From the NCBI RefSeq assembly GCF_902459465.1, contig NC_047074.1:6820001-6884000 (forward strand): a DNA stretch of 64,000 bases. The letters run 5' to 3'. This document shows positions 28,222 to 61,959 of the stretch, piece after piece. Under the pieces are notes generated by a model. It worked only from the letters and a program-made list of their open reading frames with translations. It made no database searches and had not been told where the DNA came from. The stretch comes from Asterias rubens. Its lineage: Eukaryota. Each line of letters starts with the position of its first letter. Within the stretch, counting starts at the first letter, position 1. A program made the position numbers and the translations under genes.

Positions 28222-28458
28222 TTAGGAAAGTTTAATGAGACCAAAATGAGTACTATCTGGATGCAGGTTTATGACCCGATTAGCGTATGACACCCTGATC
28301 CCCACCTTGTCACCATTGTTGATTTGTACAACACCCCCAATGTAGCATGTGTTGAACTTACGATCCCGATCCACTGTACATTCTGTGCAGCTGAATCGCT
28401 TCTGCTCTCCAATGTACAGACTATGTCCCATAAACACACTAGGGTCGTAGTACAACAT
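28222..28458 (-). CDS. EDA: TNF ligand A last exon
   Basis: tttgttgtag|ATG TTG TAC...; NTCYIGGVVQINNGDKVGIRV...THFGLIKLS*. Confidence 0.93.
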   Translation of the reverse strand: MLYYDPSVFMGHSLYIGEQKRFSCTECTVDRDRKFNTCYIGGVVQINNGDKVGIRVSYANRVINLHPDSTHFGLIKLS

Positions 28459-43400: not shown

Positions 43401-45042
43401 AAACATCTAAAAAGCACACAACTGCATGTGACAAGGGTGTTTTTTCTCCCATTATTATCTCTCAATTTCGACGACCAATTAAGCTCAAATTTCCACAGGT
43501 TTGTTTTTTTATGCATATGTTGAGATGTCCGGAGTGAGAAGAATGGTCTTTGACAATTACCAATAGTGTCCAGTCTTTAAAACCCATCTTGTCTATGATG
43601 ACCCCCCCCCCCTATGATTGTATGTACTTTAGGCTTCTCACCCCTGTGACCTCGTTCTCCTTTTGCTCCCTTTTCCCCTCCAAAAGACGTACGTCCAGGC
43701 TCACCTTTTTTACCTTTCACAAATGAAACGAAACTACAATTAACACATTAAAGCACAATATTAAGAAATTTCTCATTAATATTGGAAAAACATTATATAT
43801 TTGGTTTGCGGTAACACCATTGTCTGTATCTACTTGCCAGGTAGAGTTTGTTCTTAGAGAACTGTCTTTCTTTATTCTACTACCGCTGAGTAGATTAATC
43901 GGATGTTCGGGAGACTTCTCAGTTCTGAAAAGAACTGTCCTGCTTTTTAACTACTACCCTGGTGGAAGGTATAGAAAACTCGCTTGGGCTGAAAGATACA
44001 CAAAAACTCGTGCATACCTTTGCATCTTTTGCATGCTTTTCGTCCTTCTGTAATACAAAGGAAATATCAGACAATAAAGGTACGTTTAATGTGTGATTAC
44101 ATAATGACAGAATACAAGAGAGTACGTTGAACAAAATGAGCAATTAAGCAAGCTAGACAACATACCTTTATCGCGTTGGTTACGGGTTGATCGGAAGGTC
44201 CGAAGATGAAAATCATCCTTTTCTTCTGATCTTGCTTTTTCCTGACAACATACAAGAACGATTATCAACACAACGAGGGTTTAAAGGCAGTGGACACTAA
44301 TGGTAATTAGGGAGCTGTTGATAGTATAAAACTATGTGAGAAACGGCTCCCTCTGAAGTAATGCAGTTTTCGAGAAAGCAGTATTTTTCCACGAATTTGA
44401 TTTCGAGACTTCTGACTTGATTTTGAGGTCTCGAAATCAAGCATCTGAAAGCACACAACTTGTGTGACAAGGGTGTTTTTTGTTCATTGTTATCTCGCAA
44501 CTTCGACGACCAAATTGAGCTCAAATTTTCACAGGTTTGTTATTTTATGCATATGTTGAGATACACCAAGTGAAAAGAATGGTCGTTGACAATTACCAAC
44601 AGTAATGCGCTATGGTACTAATTCTACCTCCATCATACTACCGTGCGCAACTTACCTCCGTGACTCTGTCGCCTTCTATGAAGGCACCATCATCACCCTT
44701 AGCCTTTCTGTCTCCAAAGACCTCTGCATCAAGTGCTCCTTGATTTACGGAGTTTGGAGGCAAATCACTGGTAGATAGCCTTCTGGCAACATGATCACCG
44801 TCAGTCTTCATTGGATTGTGTTCCTTTTTATTCAACTTCCATTGTATATTCTCCAGCACCAGATGCAGGTTTCTGTTCTGTATTTCAAGAATGCTAATTC
44901 TTGATTCCTGAGCTCTCAGGACTGAATGTAAACTACTGATTTCGCTTGATGACTGGTTTACAATTACGATCATGCCGACTAGTCCACAGCTCACCAAGCA
45001 GGCGACGACTAAGCCTAATTGCCAACTTCGTTGCTCCTGCAT
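28222..45042 (-). CDS. EDA: Ectodysplasin/Eiger-like TNF ligand A (EF-disulfide class), type II membrane with collagen segment, 343 aa. Exons 45042-44656, 44241-44166, 43713-43642, 41642-41578, 35196-35127, 30193-30069, 28458-28222
   Basis: Seven GT-AG exons total 1032 nt in frame. TM, coiled coil, furin motif RTFRSTR, Gly-X-Y run GKKGEPGRTSFGGEKGAKGERGHRGPPG, TNF motifs SAHFEG, GGIYYVYSQ, FSCTEC...NTCYIGG, HFGLIKL. The symbol means EDA-like; orthology is not tested. Confidence 0.85.
28605..28946 (-). mobile_element. MITE family A copy
   Basis: Family sequence. Confidence 0.8.
29235..29742. mobile_element. Two adjacent copies of a MITE (TIR ctgggtccaatttcatagcgctgct); fragments also at 54620-54885
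   Basis: Repeated TIR motifs in both orientations. Confidence 0.65.
30069..30193 (-). CDS. EDA: TNF ligand A exon 6
   Basis: ttgtttaag|GT...CAG|gtagga; GWVPYWKYADWMDSDVRSRFILGQTGNVTVTEGGIYYVYSQ. Confidence 0.92.
31409..31786 (-). mobile_element. MITE family A variant subfamily
   Basis: ttaaaggga...ccctttaa, variant core. Confidence 0.8.
31897..31936 (+). repeat. Short degenerate telomere-like (TTAGGG) tract
   Basis: ggggttaggggttgggtttgggttagggttaggttagg. Confidence 0.7.
32530..32655 (+). repeat. Tandem approximately 31-bp repeat, 4 copies
   Basis: gctctattgtgactcaattgcagaaa... Confidence 0.8.
32783..32975 (+). repeat. Tandem approximately 40-bp minisatellite, about 5 copies
   Basis: gttggaaccaacattgaaagggggcaggagggccacacga; no variable spacers. 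Confidence 0.85.
33790..34075 (+). mobile_element. MITE family A variant, degenerate
   Basis: Recognisable internal motifs (gagaaacggctccctctgaag). Confidence 0.6.
35127..35196 (-). CDS. EDA: TNF ligand A exon 5 (strand A)
   Basis: acccttag|CCC...GAAA|gtaagt; PHQYSVILSAHFEGDVESPAIVE. An alternative acceptor at 35180 would not fit the upstream phase. Confidence 0.75.
35455..35806 (+). mobile_element. MITE family C copy
   Basis: ttaaaggaacac...gtgttccctttaa. Confidence 0.8.
36147..36529 (+). mobile_element. MITE family A copy
   Basis: Full length, TTAA flanks. Confidence 0.85.
37212..37456. mobile_element. MITE family E copy
   Basis: TIRs intact. Confidence 0.8.
38560..38820 (-). repeat. 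Dispersed repeat; inverted copy at 63850-64000 (possible LINE 3' end)
   Basis: ggcataaacaagtacaaacaaatacattatccattt matches 63878 onward. Confidence 0.6.
41255..41555 (+). mobile_element. DeuSINE-like (Deu/Nin domain) SINE, 5'-truncated
   Basis: ttcggatgggacgtaaagccg...gtaaaagaaccc...agggggttcgccccggtgttcctgg plus gcgctatataa tail resemble the Deu-domain consensus from memory. Confidence 0.6.
41578..41642 (-). CDS. EDA: TNF ligand A exon 4
   Basis: cctttgcag|GC...CAG|gtaatt; GPPGECEHSTTTDSTTPRQGTQ. Confidence 0.75.
41904..42087. mobile_element. MITE with TIR tagacctttatcacggtgc; related fragments at about 39545-39660 and 41700-41830
   Basis: tagacctttatcacggtgc ... gcaccgtgataaaggtcta. Confidence 0.65.
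42139..42514 (-). mobile_element. MITE family A copy
   Basis: Family sequence. Confidence 0.85.
42630..42925 (-). mobile_element. tRNA-derived SINE; body fragment also at about 46790-46905
   Basis: Minus strand: A box (caagtggttaga), B box (ggttcgaatccc), then body ttggctgttgccagcttggtgtttatatccc shared with 46800. Confidence 0.65.
43183..43580 (+). mobile_element. MITE family A copy
   Basis: TTAA flanks. Confidence 0.85.
43642..43713 (-). CDS. EDA: TNF ligand A exon 3 (collagen, 72 nt, phase 1-1)
   Basis: tttgtgaaag|GT...AGGG|gtgaga; Gly-X-Y repeats. Confidence 0.8.
44166..44241 (-). CDS. EDA: TNF ligand A exon 2 (furin motif)
   Basis: tgttgtcag|GAA...AAAG|gtatg; EKARSEEKDDFHLRTFRSTRNQRDK. 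Confidence 0.8.
44281..44600 (+). mobile_element. MITE family A copy (intron 1 of TNF A)
   Basis: Family sequence with an internal deletion. Confidence 0.8.
44656..45042 (-). CDS. EDA: TNF ligand A exon 1 (signal anchor and coiled coil)
   Basis: caaccATG start with in-frame stop upstream; ends GAG|gtaagt. Confidence 0.85.
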
Positions 45043-49045: not shown

Positions 49046-50134
49046 AAGCAGCATGGTAGCAATGTGGTGAGATATGTGGTGAGATTTCTGTACACCGTCG
49101 GCAACCATTTCGAATAGAAAACCGATTGGTCGGCATTGGTCTTGGTGAAATCGTCAGTAATCGTAGTGGCAGCGAGTCAGAAACAATGTTTACGTATAGA
49201 AAGCAGTCAAGTTGGGCGGAGTCTTCAATCTGCCAAATTGCTGGATTATGCCGGCGATTATTATTAATTAACATTTATTTCATCGTTGTCCATTCATCTT
49301 ACAATACATAGATTAACATTACATTCAGTTACACAATAACATGTTTATGATAAAGTAGGCTATTACAATGTATACGCAATATAACTAATAGATTAATAAC
49401 AATTTTATATGTAATAAGCGGTAGGACAACAATTAGGTTCAGGTGAAGCCGTGGCTTTTGTTCCTTAACCTATGGACAGACGAACACAAAAATAACAGCA
49501 CCAGCACATATTGTACAGACAATAGACTTGACAGACAAACACAACAACGGCTAATGTAAGGTGTGTTGAAAGATAACATAACCTAGGCAATGCAGAAACA
49601 GTCATAATCTATGAATATCCATCAAGTAGTTGCTTTTTCAAATTTCTTGTAAAGACAGGTAGAGTAATTGATTTTTTAATTGAGTTCTCAGACCATTCCA
49701 GAACCCAACTCCACGCTGAACAAAACTCTTTTGGTATAATGATGTTCTTTGGCGGGAAACAAACAAATTTGTCTTTGCAGTACTTCGAGTATTATATGAA
49801 TGGACTTTTGAAGTTAAAGTGAAAAATGAACTAAAATTATACCCCGACTTGCTAAATGTTTGCGATCGGGGTGATTGTCATGATCTTAGTAAGGTCGTAG
49901 TGCTGTGTGAACGGGGTATAACAAACTACGCGTAGCAGATTGATATTTATCTCACTTCCCAGACCCATGGGTGTGGGTCAACTTGCTGGTAATATCTGGC
50001 CTCGCTCGTCGCGTCTGTCACAACATTTCTGTTTTTTACTGTATATTTTTCTGTATAGTAATGTGCCTTTAAGTTTTAAGGTTATTATTATAGTTGCTTT
50101 GAGATTGACTTTGAGGTTGACTTTGCTTGTGTCG

Positions 50135-51780
50135 GTGCCGTTGCTCATGGCGTTGCCCCTACCATTGCCGATGCCATTGGCCGTGGCGTTGCCCCTACCG
50201 CTGCCGATGCCATTGGCTATGGCGTTGCCCCTACCATTGCCGATGCCATTGGCCATGGCGTTGCCCCTACCGCTGCCAATGCCATTGGCCATGGCGTTGC
50301 CCCTACCATTGCCGATGCCATTGGCCATGGCGTTGCCTCTACCGTTGCCGATGCCATAGGCCATGGCCTTGCCCTACCATTGCCGATGCCATTGCCCATG
50401 GCCTTGCCCAACCATTGCCGATGCCATTGGCCGTGGCGTTGCCCTTACCGTTGCCGATGCCATTGGCCGTGGCGTTGCCCCTACCGTTGCCGATGCCATT
50501 GCCCATGCCGTTGCCCCTACCATTGCCGATGCCATTTGCTGTGGCGTTGCCCCTACCATTGGCCGTGGCGTTGCCCCTACCATTGCCGATGCCATTGGCC
50601 ATGGCGTTGCCCCTACCATTGCCGATGCCATTGGCCATGGCGTTGCCCCTACCATTGCCGATGCCATTGGCCATGGCGTTGCCCCTACCGTTGCCGATGC
50701 CATTTGCCGTGGCGTTGCCCTTACCAATGCCGATGCCATTTGCCGTGGCGTTGCCCCTACCGTTGCCGATGCCATTTGCCGTGGCGTTGCCCCTACCATT
50801 GCCGATGCCATTGGCCATGGCGTTGCCCCTACCATTGCCCATGGCGTTGCCCCACCATTGCCGATACCATTGGCCATGGCGTTGCCCCTACCAATGCCGA
50901 TGCCATTTGCCGTGGCGTTGCCCCTACCGTTGCCGATGCCATTTGCCGTGGCGTTGCCCTTACCATTGCCGATGCCATTGGCCATGGCGTTGCCCCTACC
51001 ATTGCCGATGCCATTTGCCGTGGCGTTGCCCCTACCATTGCCGATGCCATTGGCCATGGCGTTGCCCCTACCATTGCCCATGGCGTTGCCCCACCATTGC
51101 CGATACCATTGGCCATGGCGTTGCCCCTACCAATGCCGATGCCATTTGCCGTGGCGTTGCCCCTACCGTTGCCGATGCCATTTGCCGTGGCGTTGCCCTT
51201 ACCATTGCCGATGCCATTGGCCATGGCGTTGCCCCTACCATTGCCGATGCCATTTGCCGTGGCGTTGCCCCTACCATTGCCGATGCCATTGGCCATGGCA
51301 TTGCCCCTACCATTGCCGATGCCATTTGCCGTGGCGTTGCCCCTACCGTTGCCAATGCCATTTGCCGTGGCGTTGCCCTTACCATTGCCGATGCCATTGG
51401 CCATGGCGTTGCCCCTACCATTGCCGATGCCATTTGCCGTGGCGTTGCCCCTACCGTTGCCGATGCCATTGGCCATGGCGTTGCCCCTACCGTTGCCGAT
51501 GCCATTTGCCGTGGCATTGCCCCTACCGTTGCCGATGCCATTGGCCATGGCGTTGCCCCTACCGTTGCCGATGCCATTTGCCGTGGCATTGCCCCTACCG
51601 TTGCCGATGCCATTGGCCATGGCGTTGCCCCTACCGTTGCCGATGCCATTTGCCGTGGCGTTGCCCCTACCGTTGCCGATGCCATTTGCCGTGGCGTTGC
51701 CCCTACCATTGCCGATGCCATTTGCCACGGCATTGCCCCTACCATTGCCGATGCCATTTGCCATGGCGTTGCATCTACCG
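50135..51780 (+). repeat. GC-rich 36-bp minisatellite (gcgttgcccctaccattgccgatgccattggccatg), about 45 units
   Basis: Directly visible; hexamer substructure; 239-bp higher-order duplication (gatacc variant at 50863 and 51102). Confidence 0.95.
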
Positions 51781-51809
51781 GGATTCGAAAGCGTCCTTGG
51801 GAGAATGTA

Positions 51810-52260
51810 TTTTGGAACGTAAGCATATCTTGGAACGTAAGCATATCTTGGAACGTAAGCATATCTTGGAACGTAAGCGTAGCGGGGTATCTTGGAACGT
51901 AAACGTAGCTGCGTATGGAACGTAAGTCTAACTTGACTCAGGATTGAAAGCGTACCTTTTGAGTTTATAGCGTAACTTGAAGGAACGTAAGCGTATGTTT
52001 GAATGTAAGCGTACCTGAGTAGCTGCGTAGCTTGGAACGTAAGCATATCTTGGAACGTAAGTGAGCTGGTATCTTGGAACATAAACACGAAACTGCGTAT
52101 GGAACGTAAACGTAGCTTGACTCGGGCTTGAAAACGTACCTTTTGATATTATAGCTTAACTTGAAGGAACGTAAGCGTAGCTGAGTAGCTGCGTAGATTG
52201 GCGCGTAACTGTACAATATCTTTTGGAACGTAGTCGTAACCATATCTTTTGGAACAGCTC
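51810..52260 (+). repeat. 18-bp tandem repeat (ttggaacgtaagcatatc) plus degenerate larger duplicated blocks
   Basis: Perfect units at about 51812-51875; aaagcgtaccttttga / aaaacgtaccttttga block repeated near 51947 and 52131. Confidence 0.85.
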
Positions 52261-55275: not shown

Positions 55276-55962
55276 TCTTTGTTGTTCCTTTCACTTGGAC
55301 TACTCCAGCAACACTCTTCGTTTGTACATTATGTGAATTTAGAACATTTTATTCATTGCTGATTATAGTTCTCTGGAAAAAAAAATGTTGTGTTTTTCAG
55401 CAAGAAGTTCGGAGTGTTTACAATTATACAGTTTTAAATTGAAACCGCATATGATACGAATAAACTGTGCACCTTCACTGGGGAAAAACTGTCAATATCA
55501 GTATCACTTAAATATGTTTGACACTAAGGATATGTGAAGTTGCAACTGTGACACAGTGAGGTGTATATGCTTGATTTGTAGACAGCGGGAGGGAGGTGTA
55601 GATGGCGTCTATCTAGTAATTCCATATACCCACATCATTCTCGCAATGGTTCAACCATACACCTGCTTCAACGTATCACTTGTTTCTAGAGAACCGACTG
55701 ATATGATTTTGCTCCTGCCAATGCTTCCCGTAATGTGCTACCAAATCAGCTAATTGACAACATCTCCGGGAGTCCAACTTTTTAGCAAGGAAATGTCATG
55801 ATTTATTCCTGAATGGTTGGTAGACAGAATCAAGCTTTCGAACGCACACAACGTGACAATCCTGACTCTTGCGTGGAAATATACTTATCATTGACGATGC
55901 AATACAATCAGAGTTCTCTATAAATCAAACTTCCATCTTTAAGTTAATTTCAAACAACTACC

Positions 55963-56115
55963 ATGGAAATTCGTGTGTTGATCATCGGTTATGGATTTAC
56001 TGTCATGTTTTTGTTCAGTATTTTAGAAGCTTCAACCGTAGATGAAAATCGCCAGTGCACCCGGTACTTCTACACAGAAACTGTCCGACATCCAAAGAAG
56101 GATTGCAACGAAAAG
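55963..56115 (+). CDS. NDP: Norrin-like coding exon 1
   Basis: ctaccATGG start; 51 codons; donor AAG|gtattg. Not in the ORF track. Confidence 0.9.
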
Positions 56116-59000
56116 GTATTGTAACTTTTGTTTTGTAAACTGATATGCATGTGTATACCCGATCAAGAGTAATATTTAACTCTAGGCAGTGGACACTATT
56201 GGTAATTATTACTCAAAATAACTATTAGCATAAAACCTTACTTGGTTACGAGTAATGGGGAGAGGTTGATAGTTTAAAACAGTGTGATAAACGGCTCCCT
56301 CTGAAGTAATGTAGTTTTCGAGAACGAAGTTATTTTCCACGAACTTGATTTTGAGACCTCAGAATTAGATGTTGAGTTCTCGAAGTCAAGCATCTGAAAG
56401 CACACAACTTCGTGTGACAAGGTTTTTTTCTTTCATAGTTATCTCGCAACTGCGACAACCGATTGAGCTCAAATTTTCACAGGTTTGTTATCTTGTGCAT
56501 ATCTTGAGATACACCAATTGAGAAGACGAGTCTTTGACAATTACCAATACTGTCCACTGTCTTTAAGTAATGTTTAGCCTCCGAGAAAACCTCTGCTATT
56601 GGGTCAGAACGTCAGGCCATGAATAGCATTTTTAGTATTATTCTTATTTGATGAAAACATTACTCTTCAAGTGTTTTTTATTTCATTTTATGAACCCCTT
56701 TTGAGACCCACACATACATCGGTAATGGCTTGATTAAACCCACAGCAAGCTGCAGCTAATGAGCATAATAATAATAGAGCCATGTAACTTCGTTATAAGA
56801 TAAAGTGAGAGTTATCCCGTTGGTGGTTGTCTCTTGGCCACCATTCCAACAAGAGAAACATCTCTGTCAGAGTTGAGCTGTTGGGATAAATCTGAACAAA
56901 TTAGTTGTGTCTTCAGCAGTTTGTTGAACACGAGTAAGGGCTATGTAATAACCAAACGAAACATAGCAGCCTTGGTACAGAGGGTTGGGGTGAGAGAGTT
57001 TCAACCTTTTATGTATTAAAGTAAGCGATGGCCAACACAAAGGTGAGAACATTTCTGAAATAAATATGGTGCTCAGTCACGCACGGTCATACAAAAAGAA
57101 GAACTGTTGTTGTTTTTCTGTTGGGAACGGGAATCAATGGAGTTCTTGAAGAATTCTGAATTCATATTTTGCTGTTCCAGTGATTAGCGTGTTGTTTTAA
57201 AGGATTTGGGTACTTTTTTTTAAATGTCCATTGATTTACATTAAACTTACAGGGTTTGAAGATAATGATGGTGGAAAGCTTCCCTTCAAATATTACTTAC
57301 AGAGGTGCTGTAGTTTTTGAGAAATGAGTATAACAATGTCATGAAAATACGTTTGTAAATGCTTAAAATAATTTTCGTCTCATGAGACGAAAATTAATTT
57401 CATGCCATTGTTTTACTCATTTCCCAAAAACTACAGCACCTCAGCACGTAATATTTCAGGGAAGCTTTCTACTATCATTATCTTCAAACTGTGTAAGTTT
57501 AGTGTAAATCTGTGGACATTGTGTTTTTTGTCCTACAAAAAGTACATACACCCTTTAAAGTTGTCCATGTTTAGGGTTAGGGTTATGGTCAGGGTGAGGG
57601 TTAAGGTTAGGGTTAGGTTGGGGTTAGGGTTAGGGTTATAGGGTTAGGGTTAGAGTTAGGGTTAGGGTTAGGTAAGGTTATGGTTTGGGTTTGGGTTAGA
57701 GTTAGATTTAGGCTTATGGTTAGGGTTAGTGTTATGTTAGGGTTAGGTAAAGGGTATGACAATTAGGCTGCAAGGTAATATTAGCCTTCCAATTTTTAAA
57801 GGTAAGTCCTTTGGAGCTTACAAAAATTCACTCCAAGATGTAGGCTACTTCTTCAGTGAGCAGTGCGCACCCAAGTATGAATTATTTTCGGACTTTTTGA
57901 TGTCATTGGAAAGTTGTTCCACCAGAATCATATATTTTTTATTCGGCAGTCATTTCAAAAGTGTATACAGTATTTTTTATAACACAGGATGAATGACAAC
58001 ACACATTATACCCATAGATTATACAAGAATGTTGAGTTATTGGCAAGAGAGCATGTTGGGAATTTGCCGACGGGCGCGACTGGTTTTTGGGGCCGTCTGC
58101 GGTCGCTAGCGGATTCATAGGCGACAATTGACGGCAACACACGATGATTGGCGGCAAATTCAAAATAAAAATTCACAGCTGGACATAGCTTGCCGTACCC
58201 CCTATTAGTCATAGTGTTAGCCAGCCTCAAACGACTGGAAAATAATGCAACCAATTATAGATTAAAGATACTATCTAGACACTACTGGTAATGTCAAAGA
58301 CAAGTCTTTTCTCAGTCGTTGTATCTTAACATAATATGCATAAAAAACAAACCTGTGAAGATTTGAGCTCAATCAGACGTCGAAGCTACGAAATAATAAT
58401 AAAAGAAACAAACTTCATTGTCACACAAAGTTGTGTGCTTTCAGATGCTTGATTTCGGGACCTCCAAATCTAATTCTGAGGTCTCGAAATCAATTTCGTG
58501 GTAAATTACTTATTTCTCGAAAGTATGTTAGTTCAGAGGGAGCCGTTTCTCAACATGTTTTGTACTCAACAGCTCTCCATTGCTTGTTACCAAGTACTTT
58601 TTAATGCTAACATTTATTTTGAGTAATTACCAATAGTGTCCACTGCCTTTAAACGACTGGAGGATATTACAACATTAATATATGAGTATTATCTCCGTTC
58701 CAGGTTGTCTTGATGTCGAGATGTGCTGGCCGATGTGAGTTGATGTCATCAGCTGATCCAGTCATTGGTTTCCGTAGTATTCTCAAACACCCCTTTACTT
58801 ATCGATGTAGTAGTTGTCAGGATCAAAGCTCAATGATGAAGGCAGTTCGATTGCGGTGTAGAAATGATGAGAGGGTGTATGCTGTATACCGCTACATACT
58901 ACAATGTCACTGTTCAGCATGCAAGATTGGATTACATCGCCGTTCTGGCTCAACGGTCATTACTTACAACATTGTTTTACTTCTTCTATATACTTATTAA
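55963..59000 (+). CDS. NDP: Norrin (Norrie disease protein) homologue, cystine-knot growth factor, 149 aa. Exons 55963-56115 and 58704-59000
   Basis: Signal peptide MEIRVLIIGYGFTVMFLFSILEA. CTRYFYTETVRHPKKDCNEK|VVLMSRCAGRC...ILKHPFTYRCSSCQDQSSMMKAVRLRC...YRYILQCHCSAC aligns without gaps to human Norrin as I recall it. Phase-0 intron AAG|gtattg...ttccag|GTT. Confidence 0.92.
56183..56566 (+). mobile_element. MITE family A copy (5' end of the Norrin intron)
   Basis: Family sequence. Confidence 0.85.
57197..57558 (+). mobile_element. MITE family D (TTAA-flanked)
   Basis: ttaaaggatttgggtac...gtacatacaccctttaa. Related fragments at about 878-1077 and 23800-24005. Confidence 0.75.
57571..57753 (+). 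repeat. Interstitial telomere-like (TTAGGG)n tract, about 180 bp, degenerate
   Basis: ttagggttagggttatggtcagggtgagggttaaggttaggg... Confidence 0.9.
58262..58652 (-). mobile_element. MITE family A copy (3' end of the Norrin intron)
   Basis: TTAA flanks. Confidence 0.85.
58704..59000 (+). CDS. NDP: Norrin-like coding exon 2
   Basis: ctccgttccag|GTT; cystine-knot cysteines; stop TAA at 58998-59000. Confidence 0.92.
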   Translation, partial: VVLMSRCAGRCELMSSADPVIGFRSILKHPFTYRCSSCQDQSSMMKAVRLRCRNDERVYAVYRYILQCHCSACKIGLHRRSGSTVITYNIVLLLLYTY

Positions 59001-59012
59001 TTCACATTCCGT

Positions 59013-59299
59013 TTAAAGACACTATTGGTAATTGTCAAAGTTTTCTCACTTGGTTTATCTCAACATGTGCATCAAATAACAAACCTGTGAAAACTTGAGC
59101 TCAATCGGTCGTCGAAGTTGCGAGATAATAATGAAAGAAAAAACACTCTTGTCACACGAAGTTGAGTGGATTCGGATTCTTTATTTCGAGAGGGAGCCGT
59201 TTCTCACAATGTTTTATTCTATCAACATCTTCCAAATATTCGTTACCAGGTGAGGTGTTAGTAATTATTTTGAGTAATTACCAAAAGTGTCCACTGCCT
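59013..59299 (-). mobile_element. MITE family A copy, 12 bp after the Norrin stop, internal deletion
   Basis: Family sequence. Confidence 0.8.
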
Positions 59300-60038
59300 G
59301 TACGTAACTCGTGAAACAAATATTATGGAGGAATGTTTACATATTGTAGTTTTTGTTTGATGATATATTTTATTTAGTCAATGTCGTGAACTATTGTGTT
59401 TTGTTGTCCCATGGGAGTGGCCCTTTTCTGTGGTCAAATGATAATTGTTTTAATATTATTCGCCATTTCATATTGTAACAAACGGTTATACAGTACACAT
59501 AATTAATTAGAATACTGAAATGTTATTAGAATTCATTGAAGGTTTTTATGTATGTTTTAATATGCCTATTAATTAGTTTATCCGTCTTTATCGCGCATTA
59601 GTGTTGTACAATAGCGTAATATTCTGTAGGCGCAGTGCACCTTAATTTACTAACTTTACAAACAAATTGCCCCAAACATGTGCCGGGCTGTACATTTGAA
59701 ATAAAAAGACAAAAAAACATTCCCCCGAGGTATACTTCTTGGTAATTTTTTATTTTATTTTATTTTTTAGGGGCTGCACGCACTAAAAACTAAAAATTAC
59801 AAAGAACGGGCTGTTGAAATTTTAAAACCAAAAGTATTACAACATGTTATATACATGTTTCTAACATACCATATCGTCAGTGTGAAGTAAGAGAGTTTGA
59901 TACCCCAACTTCTCTTTGTGTTCTCTTAACTTTACAAATTCTGAAGACCTGAACATGAGCAATACAATTTTGTTGCACGCATTGAACCAGCCTGACTACC
60001 ATTACATTATACATAACCACTGGTCGTGAGTTGTTATG

Positions 60039-60408
60039 TTAAAGGTAGTGGACACTATTCGTAATTACTCAAAATAATTATTAGCATAAAACCTTACTTA
60101 AATACAAGTAATGGGGAGAGGTTGATGGTATAAAACATTGTGAGAAATAGCTCCCTCTGAAGTGACGTAGTAATTTTCCACGACGTTGATTTCGAGACCT
60201 CAATTTAAGAATTTGAGGTCTCGAAATCAAGCATCAGAAAGCACACAACTTCGTGACACAAGGGTTTTTTTCTTTCATTATTATCTCGCAAATTCGACGA
60301 CCGATTGCGCTCAAATTTTCACAGGTTTGTTATTTTATGCATCTTTCGAGATACACTAACTGTGAAGACTAGTCTTTGACAATTACCAATAGTGTCCACT
60401 GCCTTTAA
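60039..60408 (+). mobile_element. MITE family A copy
   Basis: TTAA flanks. Confidence 0.85.
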
Positions 60409-61959
60409 TCGAAAAATGCAAATGTCGAGAAACCTCGTCGGAGGTCCACTTGTTGGTTTATTGAGTTTCACTTTTCTTTTCGAAATCATACTCAAATGAT
60501 ATGTACTTTTCGTTACATTACACTGTCTTGTAGGTCAAGATACAAAGGAACTGAAGTACAGCACACTGTGTCATGGAGTTACTTACGGAGTGAAGGGCAA
60601 CACCGCACCATGCAGAAGATACAACAAGGAATCATCCACTGCGAATTCATCACGAAAACCGTACAACAATTGGGCAACAATTAGGCCATGGGCCGAAAGT
60701 CAAAAAGTCCTCTAGAGATAGGAGAATGTTGCAGCCCCAAGGGTGAAGGGGAGATGTATTTATCAAAATGTAGGGAATTGTGGCCTCTTCAAGAAGAAGA
60801 AAAAAATTGTTCTACTTAAAATACTGGTTAATGAGCGATAAATCAAAGACGGCGGCAATAATTCAAGATGGAGGCCGTTTATTTTATTCTTTTGTAATAA
60901 TGTGGTAGTGAACATGTAACCTGGAAAAGGGAACACTTGGAGATTTACTAAATAAAATTGAATTTCTGATAAATATCGCTCTGGGGAACTCGCTTGCAAT
61001 GAGAAGTGTAAATCTAAAATCGAGTGAGGATAAGAACGCGAGGCAATTTGATAAAAAAAGAAACAATGACCACTGACTTTTATAGGAACAAGGACAAATT
61101 GTATTTATTTGATCCACTCAAATCTCACATAGAAATTGTATGGAGAAGAAACCAAACAATTCCAAGAAATTCAACTGGAAATCATTTCTAAAAATAGATT
61201 CAACAATCAACACATCTTAAATCTGTTTTCACCAAGTACTAAAAAATAGATCCAGCACACTCGTGAAACTAATGAGTTGACTGTACTTGAAATAAACAGT
61301 GGTTTTGAATTGAATCAAACACTAATAAAAACCCAGCAGAATTTAACTATAGGATAGGCTAGTAATAAAAAAAACAAAATGTGAAAACCTAAACAAAACA
61401 AAAACCAACACAAACACACTGAAATTAACAGCTTTATACAGAAATGTTGAGAGCTTGCATGCAAATTATCATCTGGAAGGATTTCACAAGAACATGGAAA
61501 GTGGCTGTTAACAAAATGGCTACCATTATCAACCTAAATGCATGTTTTACCAATTAATAATCAACCAAGTATGTACAGTATGTATGTGCGGCCGTTGCAG
61601 GAGATGTAATTTTGTCACGTGAAATTTTAAGTAGTTAGTTTATGACCTGGTGTAATACGATTTAAAAATGGCCAAAACCAGAAAGACTTGTGGGATGGGG
61701 TGGGGATGATGTGCCCCCATTAGCCACGCCCCCCAAAAAAATACAATCTCAAAAATTGAAACCGTCATCATCACAGTTACAAATGTACAACTCTTCAAGA
61801 TAGAAAACCTTTTGTGATGTACAATTTAACAAAGTATGTGTGAGGGAAATGTAGATGATGGAAGAGGGGTCCAGTGTCTGCTAACATCCCCACCCCACCC
61901 CCGTTCTGAACAATTTTCCTGTGGAGGCATGCACAATTCGCATTTTGGTCAAAAAGTTA

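Follow-up and report, generated by a model that had tools for sequence, protein, structure and literature searches.

An intact, single-copy Norrin (NDP) ortholog in the sea star Asterias rubens

Norrin has been studied almost only as a vertebrate ligand that builds retinal and brain vasculature. In the structural description of the protein, C93, C95, and C131 form the interchain disulfides, K58, R107, R109, and R115 bind heparan sulfate at the glycosaminoglycan (GAG) site, four residues of Frizzled-4 are named as determinants of Fz4 specificity, and a patch for LRP5/6 (K54, R90, R97, G112, R121) is put forward as "proposed" only (PMC4497409). In the searchable literature, no description of an invertebrate Norrin or of its function turned up; an EchinoDB table lists Norrin matches obtained by BLAST only (PMC9590158), and a BLAST search for Norrin in a liver fluke was negative (PMC6114109). 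The gene considered here is the Norrin gene of the sea star Asterias rubens, which lies on the forward strand of a window of 64,000 nucleotides (contig NC_047074.1; G000:C14:6820001-6884000) in an assembly of 417.6 Mb. It extends from window position 55963 to 60554, has three coding exons, and encodes a protein of 141 residues. This locus is a genuine, intact, single-copy ortholog of Norrin. The initial annotation of the window, made from the bare sequence, implied that the gene was novel. It is not a new discovery, because the automatic NCBI annotation already holds the same 141-residue protein without any difference (XP_033637884.1, "norrin-like [Asterias rubens]"; P0051 in our set), and many invertebrate relatives are already labeled "norrin-like".

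The DAN family (NBL1) and mucin CTCK domains share the cystine-knot superfamily fold class with Norrin, and they give only weak profile matches to the sea-star protein. Against the PDB, exon 2 matched human Norrin without gaps at E=3.7e-20, and the next families were NBL1/DAN at E=0.015 and MUC2 at E=0.23, a lead for Norrin of about 17-19 orders of magnitude (in round figures, 1e-20 against 1e-2 or weaker). Pfam returned generic matches to exon 2 alone that did not reach the gathering score (Cys_knot, 22.1 bits against a cut-off of 24; DAN, PF03045, 19.4 bits against 22, E=0.0011). These would suit a protein of another cystine-knot family, such as DAN/gremlin, bursicon, GPA2/GPB5, or a detached mucin/SLIT-type CTCK domain, that merely resembles Norrin. 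That explanation is effectively refuted by the ranking of the PDB matches, by a profile search in which every match read or looked up was a Norrin, by an intron position in common with Norrin, and by the distinctness of the CTCK domains and glycoprotein-hormone-like exons of this genome, most of the CTCK domains falling outside the Norrin group in a tree.

The profile was built from two window exons and the Amphiura protein, and all of 1.84 billion cluster representatives were scored with it. At E<=1e-3 there were 43 matches, and those that were read or looked up are without exception Norrin or norrin-like proteins. An earlier word-index search with exon 2 only gave one protein and was superseded by the exhaustive search and a second profile search. 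A maximum-likelihood tree built on 97 columns, with six sea-star CTCK domains as outgroups, places the sea-star protein in an Ambulacraria clade (support 90/94) within the Norrin family, together with the ophiuroids (91/84). The topology is congruent with the taxa (Cephalochordata 99/97, Protostomia 85/83); five of the six outgroups lie outside the Norrin group, and one long-branch outgroup strays inside it. There is one Norrin copy in the sea-star genome, the next match being a mucin-type CTCK domain at E=0.002, and the sea star's own CTCK domains (e.g., L003/L032) are sequences separate from Norrin. The initial annotation had called the gene a clear Norrin ortholog and had named phylogeny and BLAST against the other cystine-knot families as the check; the protein groups with Norrin in the PDB, profile, and CTCK-outgroup comparisons above, and the assignment is borne out by the E-value against human Norrin, the Norrin-only profile matches, the intron position, the single copy, and the tree. 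Elsewhere in the genome, three clustered exons (G000:C1:20546738-20592588) encode the C-terminal half of a cystine-knot domain (e.g., ...CDPGVDPTFQYEDALSCACKKC...), and, as we judge it, their sequence is like that of glycoprotein-hormone or bursicon-type subunit genes.

Members of the Norrin family were identified by name look-ups and the second profile search. They include vertebrate Norrins (with hagfish) and proteins named "norrin-like" from Asterias rubens, Amphiura, Diadema (two species), Strongylocentrotus purpuratus, and Branchiostoma (three entries) and, among protostomes, from Crassostrea, Saccostrea, Octopus, and Priapulus. Unnamed proteins from lamprey, Mytilus, Solemya, Nucella, Tegillarca, and Lottia also matched. 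The invertebrate norrin-like proteins form one family with the sea-star protein, which is 65-67% identical to the ophiuroid proteins, and all Ambulacraria have a C-x-S-C motif and an HPKK/HPRK loop in common with it. In Saccoglossus, the Norrin domain ends a probably fused, unnamed model of 847 residues (P0002), whose N-terminal part reads as lectin/EGF-like and whose Norrin part bears a signal-like segment of its own. In Priapulus, a model of 170 residues (P0005) carries a 7tm_3 fragment ahead of the Norrin domain. Both apparent fusions to unrelated upstream genes are probably annotation artifacts.

The gene model is based on a script that seeks chains of GT-AG exons whose translation exactly equals a given protein. 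The chain in Table 1 was the only one found that gives exactly XP_033637884.1; all of its junctions are in phase 0, and its splice sites are canonical. Exon 1 contains a hydrophobic, signal-like N-terminal segment (at about residues 5-21, with a confident AlphaFold2 helix at residues 2-23) and the beta1-beta2 hairpin with C32 and C48 (human C39 and C55). Its last residue is K51 (human K58), and the GT donor follows at 56116 (GTATTG). Exon 2 opens with VVLMSRCAGRC after the AG at 58702-58703, and encodes the remaining cystine knot, including eight cysteines; its last residues are RRSGST, at a donor that reads ACG followed by GTCATT. A single coding intron and a gene end at 59000 had been claimed in the initial annotation. 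Both were wrong: a second phase-0 intron precedes a terminal exon of six codons, and the exact match to XP_033637884.1 sets the end at 60554. The two-exon model ending at 59000 was rejected. It reads through the second donor and the first 42 nt of intron 2 to a TAA at 58998-59000, which would append a hydrophobic tail that is not conserved and is seen in no relative. Amphiura filiformis supports the three-exon form, since its exon 2 is likewise 252 nt long and is followed by a terminal exon of 27 nt (stop included) that encodes a basic tail, KIRMTAKKP, comparable to VKIQRN in the sea star. Unlike these two, the Diadema norrin-like gene has no terminal micro-exon.

Table 1. Features of the Norrin locus and its surroundings, in window coordinates.
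Feature	Position	Strand	Description	Basis
TATAAA motif	55919-55924	+	putative core promoter, 39 nt before ATG	sequence reading only
ACCATGG	55960-55966	+	strong Kozak context round the start codon	sequence reading
Coding exon 1	55963-56115	+	51 codons, ends ...DCNEK	identical to P0051 residues 1-51
Intron 1	56116-58703	+	phase 0, GT...AG, 2588 nt	sequence and exact exon chain
Coding exon 2	58704-58955	+	84 codons, residues 52-135	exact exon chain
Intron 2	58956-60533	+	phase 0, GT...AG	exact exon chain
Coding exon 3	60534-60554	+	VKIQRN and TGA stop, short basic tail	exact exon chain
AATAAA	60951-60956	+	candidate polyadenylation signal, about 400 nt past the stop	sequence reading only
Interspersed repeat copies	56142-56597, 57168-57623, 58300-58652, 59000-59290		flank exon 2, some inverted
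(TTAGGG)n tract	about 57570-57760		degenerate, telomere-like, ~190 bp, in intron 1
TNF-homology-domain exon	28225-28458	-	~27 kb upstream of the Norrin gene
ORF	44638-45042	-	type-II membrane-anchor-like
Tandem repeat	49940-52090		~2 kb, several frames open on both strands

Intron positions are a further character that the members of this family have in common. Intron 1 of the sea-star gene falls between K51 and V52 in phase 0, which corresponds to K58 and M59 in human Norrin. The position and phase are the same in Amphiura, Diadema, Branchiostoma floridae, and Crassostrea virginica, and in the five mapped invertebrates, which are all those mapped, the intron precedes the motif V/I/H/N-x-L-(M/L)-x-R-C at the same aligned position. 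The human equivalence had been given in the initial annotation. It is right, because many vertebrate open reading frame (ORF) fragments start with ...Q followed by MVLLARC (CAG and then ATG, with the acceptor read through) and a rodent model is interrupted by an insertion placed precisely between CSSK and MVLLARC. Amphioxus has one extra intron, one codon before the position of the lost C93.

Sea-star and mammalian Norrin were compared residue by residue over C39-C131 in human numbering, with residue roles taken from the structural description (PMC4497409). The sea-star protein resembles vertebrate Norrin (NDP; PDB 5BPU, 5BQC, and 4MY2) throughout this span, in which 41 of 93 residues are identical (44%) with no gaps, as the initial annotation had stated for the cystine knot. 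It had also named seven basic residues as retained, and all seven are kept in the alignment (human R41, K58, K104, R107, R109, R115, and R121; sea-star R34, K51, K97, R100, R102, R108, and R114). Ten of the 11 cysteines are present. By sequence, these include the eight of the intrachain disulfides (human C39, C55, C65, C69, C96, C110, C126, and C128), whose sea-star equivalents are C32, C48, C58, C62, C89, C103, C119, and C121, and two of the interchain set, C93 (C86) and C131 (C124). The remaining interchain cysteine, C95, is replaced by Ser88. From the gap-free match to the solved Norrin, we infer a Norrin-type three-hairpin cystine-knot fold. The sea-star protein differs from the vertebrate one in C95 and in several surface residues described below, and it has an additional short basic C-terminal tail on an exon of its own.

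The loss of C95 is widespread in the family. The other ambulacrarians all have Ser here, as does Priapulus, and hagfish has Thr; C95 is the only interchain cysteine that these lack. Lamprey (P0035) and amphioxus (P0046/L028) are without both C93 and C95, and the oyster protein (P0012) has the full gnathostome-type C-x-C-C motif. C95 thus marks gnathostomes and the oyster, and it is no defining character of the family.

The surfaces of Norrin that bind its partners are conserved to different degrees in the sea star. At the GAG site, all four residues (K58, R107, R109, and R115) are conserved. At the Fz4 site, R41, Y44, V60, L61, K104, Y120, Y122, and L124 are unchanged, and E stands in place of D46.

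Frizzled genes of the sea star were found as four long intronless ORFs, one Fzd4 and three others. The best PDB matches of L006 are FZD7/FZD1 (Fzd1/2/7-type) and those of L007 are FZD5/FZD8 (Fzd5/8-type), and the cysteine-rich domain (CRD) of L009 is closest to FZD10 in the PDB (Fzd9/10-type). L008 is the Fzd4 ortholog, with E=5.5e-222 to FZD4 versus 1e-142 to FZD1, and its CRD matches the human FZD4 CRD at E=2e-63. This CRD keeps F96, K109, N152, M157, M159, and E160, and three of the four residues called determinants of Fz4 specificity are identical to those of the human receptor (PMC4497409). Separate from the four true Frizzled genes, a dense tandem array at G000:C11:1556000-1622000 holds at least 30 short ORFs with one Frizzled-type CRD each (PF01392, E down to 1e-15), which may represent CRD-only proteins that expanded in this lineage.

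Signaling through Fzd4 appears to be the most likely mechanism of sea-star Norrin, and on the residue and receptor comparisons above we consider it somewhat probable. The protein would be secreted as a disulfide-linked homodimer, and its beta1-beta2 and beta5-beta6 hairpins would bind the CRD of the sea star's own Frizzled-4 ortholog while the conserved K51/R100/R102/R108 patch would hold a heparan-sulfate proteoglycan. Sea-star Norrin would then act as a non-Wnt activator of beta-catenin signaling in non-endothelial tissue. It may or may not recruit LRP5/6, since the proposed LRP5/6 patch is not conserved; co-receptor use and dimer chemistry probably differ from those of human Norrin.

Several observations weigh against signaling through Fzd4 in the human manner. 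Human-type C93-C95' bridges cannot form as such in the sea star because C95 is absent. At the Fz4 contacts, five residues are changed (R38Q, H43F, V45T, A63S, and K102M), and on the receptor side the CRD of L008 has D for N55, L for M105, and E/R for the GAG-contacting H154/N155. The proposed LRP5/6 patch (K54, R90, R97, G112, and R121) has D, T, Q, N, and R at these positions, and only R121 of the five is kept. The AlphaFold2 monomer, built from an alignment of 16 sequences, is a poor model (mean pLDDT 57, pTM 0.35). Modeling with the sea-star Fzd4 CRD, which the initial annotation had suggested, was favorable in part. For Norrin residues 26-130 with this CRD, the predicted complex reached an ipSAE of 0.47, whereas the best of three controls scored 0.00. 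The three runs had at least 88% of contacts in common, and the partner pLDDT was 83 or higher. This score lies in the weak band ("weak support") and may be model memory, because a similar human complex has already been solved; it is not counted as evidence for binding.

Norrin has been reported to antagonize BMP/TGF-beta in Xenopus. Two papers group Norrin with BMP antagonists and cite a role as a ligand of LGR4, which vertebrate Norrin is stated there to bind (Deng 2013, as cited in PMC4079206 and PMC9910494). Given these LGR4 and BMP/TGF-beta reports, Fzd4 is not the sole candidate partner. A true Norrin ortholog could thus act, in the sea star and perhaps ancestrally too, otherwise than as an Fzd4/LRP5-6 agonist, as a BMP/TGF-beta-family antagonist in the manner of its DAN-type relatives or as an LGR4/5/6-type ligand, with the Fzd4-LRP5/6-TSPAN12 mode refined later in vertebrates. 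The single residue retained in the LRP5/6 patch, the changed contacts on both the Norrin and the receptor sides, the weak complex score, and the weak Pfam match to DAN would all agree with such a function. However, the Fz4-specific CRD determinants K109, N152, and E160 are kept in sea-star Fzd4, and on the matching Norrin surface D46 is E and R41, V60, L61, K104, Y120, and Y122 are unchanged. The GAG patch, which links Norrin to Fz4 in the crystal structure, is unaltered, and the controls of the complex prediction scored zero. On this balance we regard a function apart from Fzd4 as rather unlikely, and we retain signaling through Fzd4 as the favored mechanism.

Expression data also stand on the contrary side. 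Four RNA-seq runs that carry the same species label, from unknown tissues and with ~1.6-1.9 Gb read from each, were examined over 55800-59200, the part of the gene with exons 1 and 2. Depth was zero in the bins 55914-56141 and 58764-58991 (exon 1 and most of exon 2) in all four runs, and no joint of exon 1 with exon 2 was found in this interval. All RNA depth and joints there come from interspersed repeats in the intron and the 3' flank. Copies of these repeats lie on both sides of exon 2, and intron 1 holds a telomere-like tract as well, which was skipped as a repeat in the read mapping (Table 1). The repeat families are abundant in the RNA-seq data, with depth up to ~1600 around 58536-58649 and many chimeric joints, and these reads evidently come from other copies elsewhere in the genome. 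A brittle-star-like ortholog (P0052) is encoded without interruption on a Logan contig of 1164 bp, which would most simply be a spliced mRNA.

Lack of reads over the two exons, together with the weak donor of intron 2 (GTCATT), would fit a silent or decaying relic, with the frame still open and expression or need lost. We consider this very unlikely. No exon contains a stop or a frameshift, the splice sites are all canonical, the structural cysteines are all kept, the length of exon 2 is conserved with brittle stars, and the identity to the ophiuroid proteins is 65-67%. The tissues of the four runs are also unknown, and vertebrate Norrin transcripts are of low abundance and spatially restricted. 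Three contigs (L042-L044), with a variant of one residue in exon 1, are 98.2-99.6% identical to the window and too close for a test of selection. The gene is best described as intact.

Neighboring features of the window include an exon of a TNF homology domain and a type-II membrane-anchor-like ORF (Table 1). The TNF exon is one of only two PF00229 matches from a six-frame search of the genome. In Branchiostoma floridae, a TNF-domain gene directly adjoins the norrin-like gene (L028 22800-30482), and linkage of Norrin and TNF may be conserved between sea star and amphioxus. By tblastn, the norrin loci of amphioxus, Amphiura, Diadema, oyster, and Priapulus contain no significant match to the window TNF exon. 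The tandem repeat between the membrane-anchor-like ORF and the Norrin gene is made of PLPLPMPLAMA / GNGRGNAMANGI-type units and has the appearance of a minisatellite, not of a gene.

Orthologs in molluscs and a priapulid, in addition to deuterostomes, indicate that the Norrin gene dates to the bilaterian ancestor. To our knowledge, sea stars have no endothelium-lined vasculature. The initial annotation had proposed that Norrin-Frizzled signaling predates endothelium-lined vessels. As regards the ligand this is supported, and over a wider range of animals than had been proposed, since the gene family is bilaterian-wide and older than such vessels, and an Fzd4 ortholog is present in the sea star. 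An equal age for the signaling would be an extrapolation from these genes, and the weak in silico score for binding, the changed LRP5/6 patch, and the lack of a transcript in the four RNA-seq runs weaken the case for it. We tentatively propose, as a possibility that falls somewhat short of probable, that the Norrin-Frizzled4 pair is an ancestral bilaterian module that was lost in flies and nematodes; in echinoderms it would have a non-vascular role, with a dimer joined by C93-C93' and C131-C131' and a co-receptor interface other than the LRP5/6 patch. If this is true, loss in flies and nematodes would explain why Norrin-Frizzled4 can pass for a vertebrate invention. Echinoderms, a hemichordate, amphioxus, molluscs, and a priapulid have the Norrin gene, together with its intron and a large part of its surface for Fz4 and heparan sulfate. 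With one Norrin gene, one Fzd4 gene, and three further Frizzled genes, the sea star offers a testable system for what Norrin did before blood vessels and for whether its Fz4 specificity and its recruitment of LRP5/6 are ancestral.

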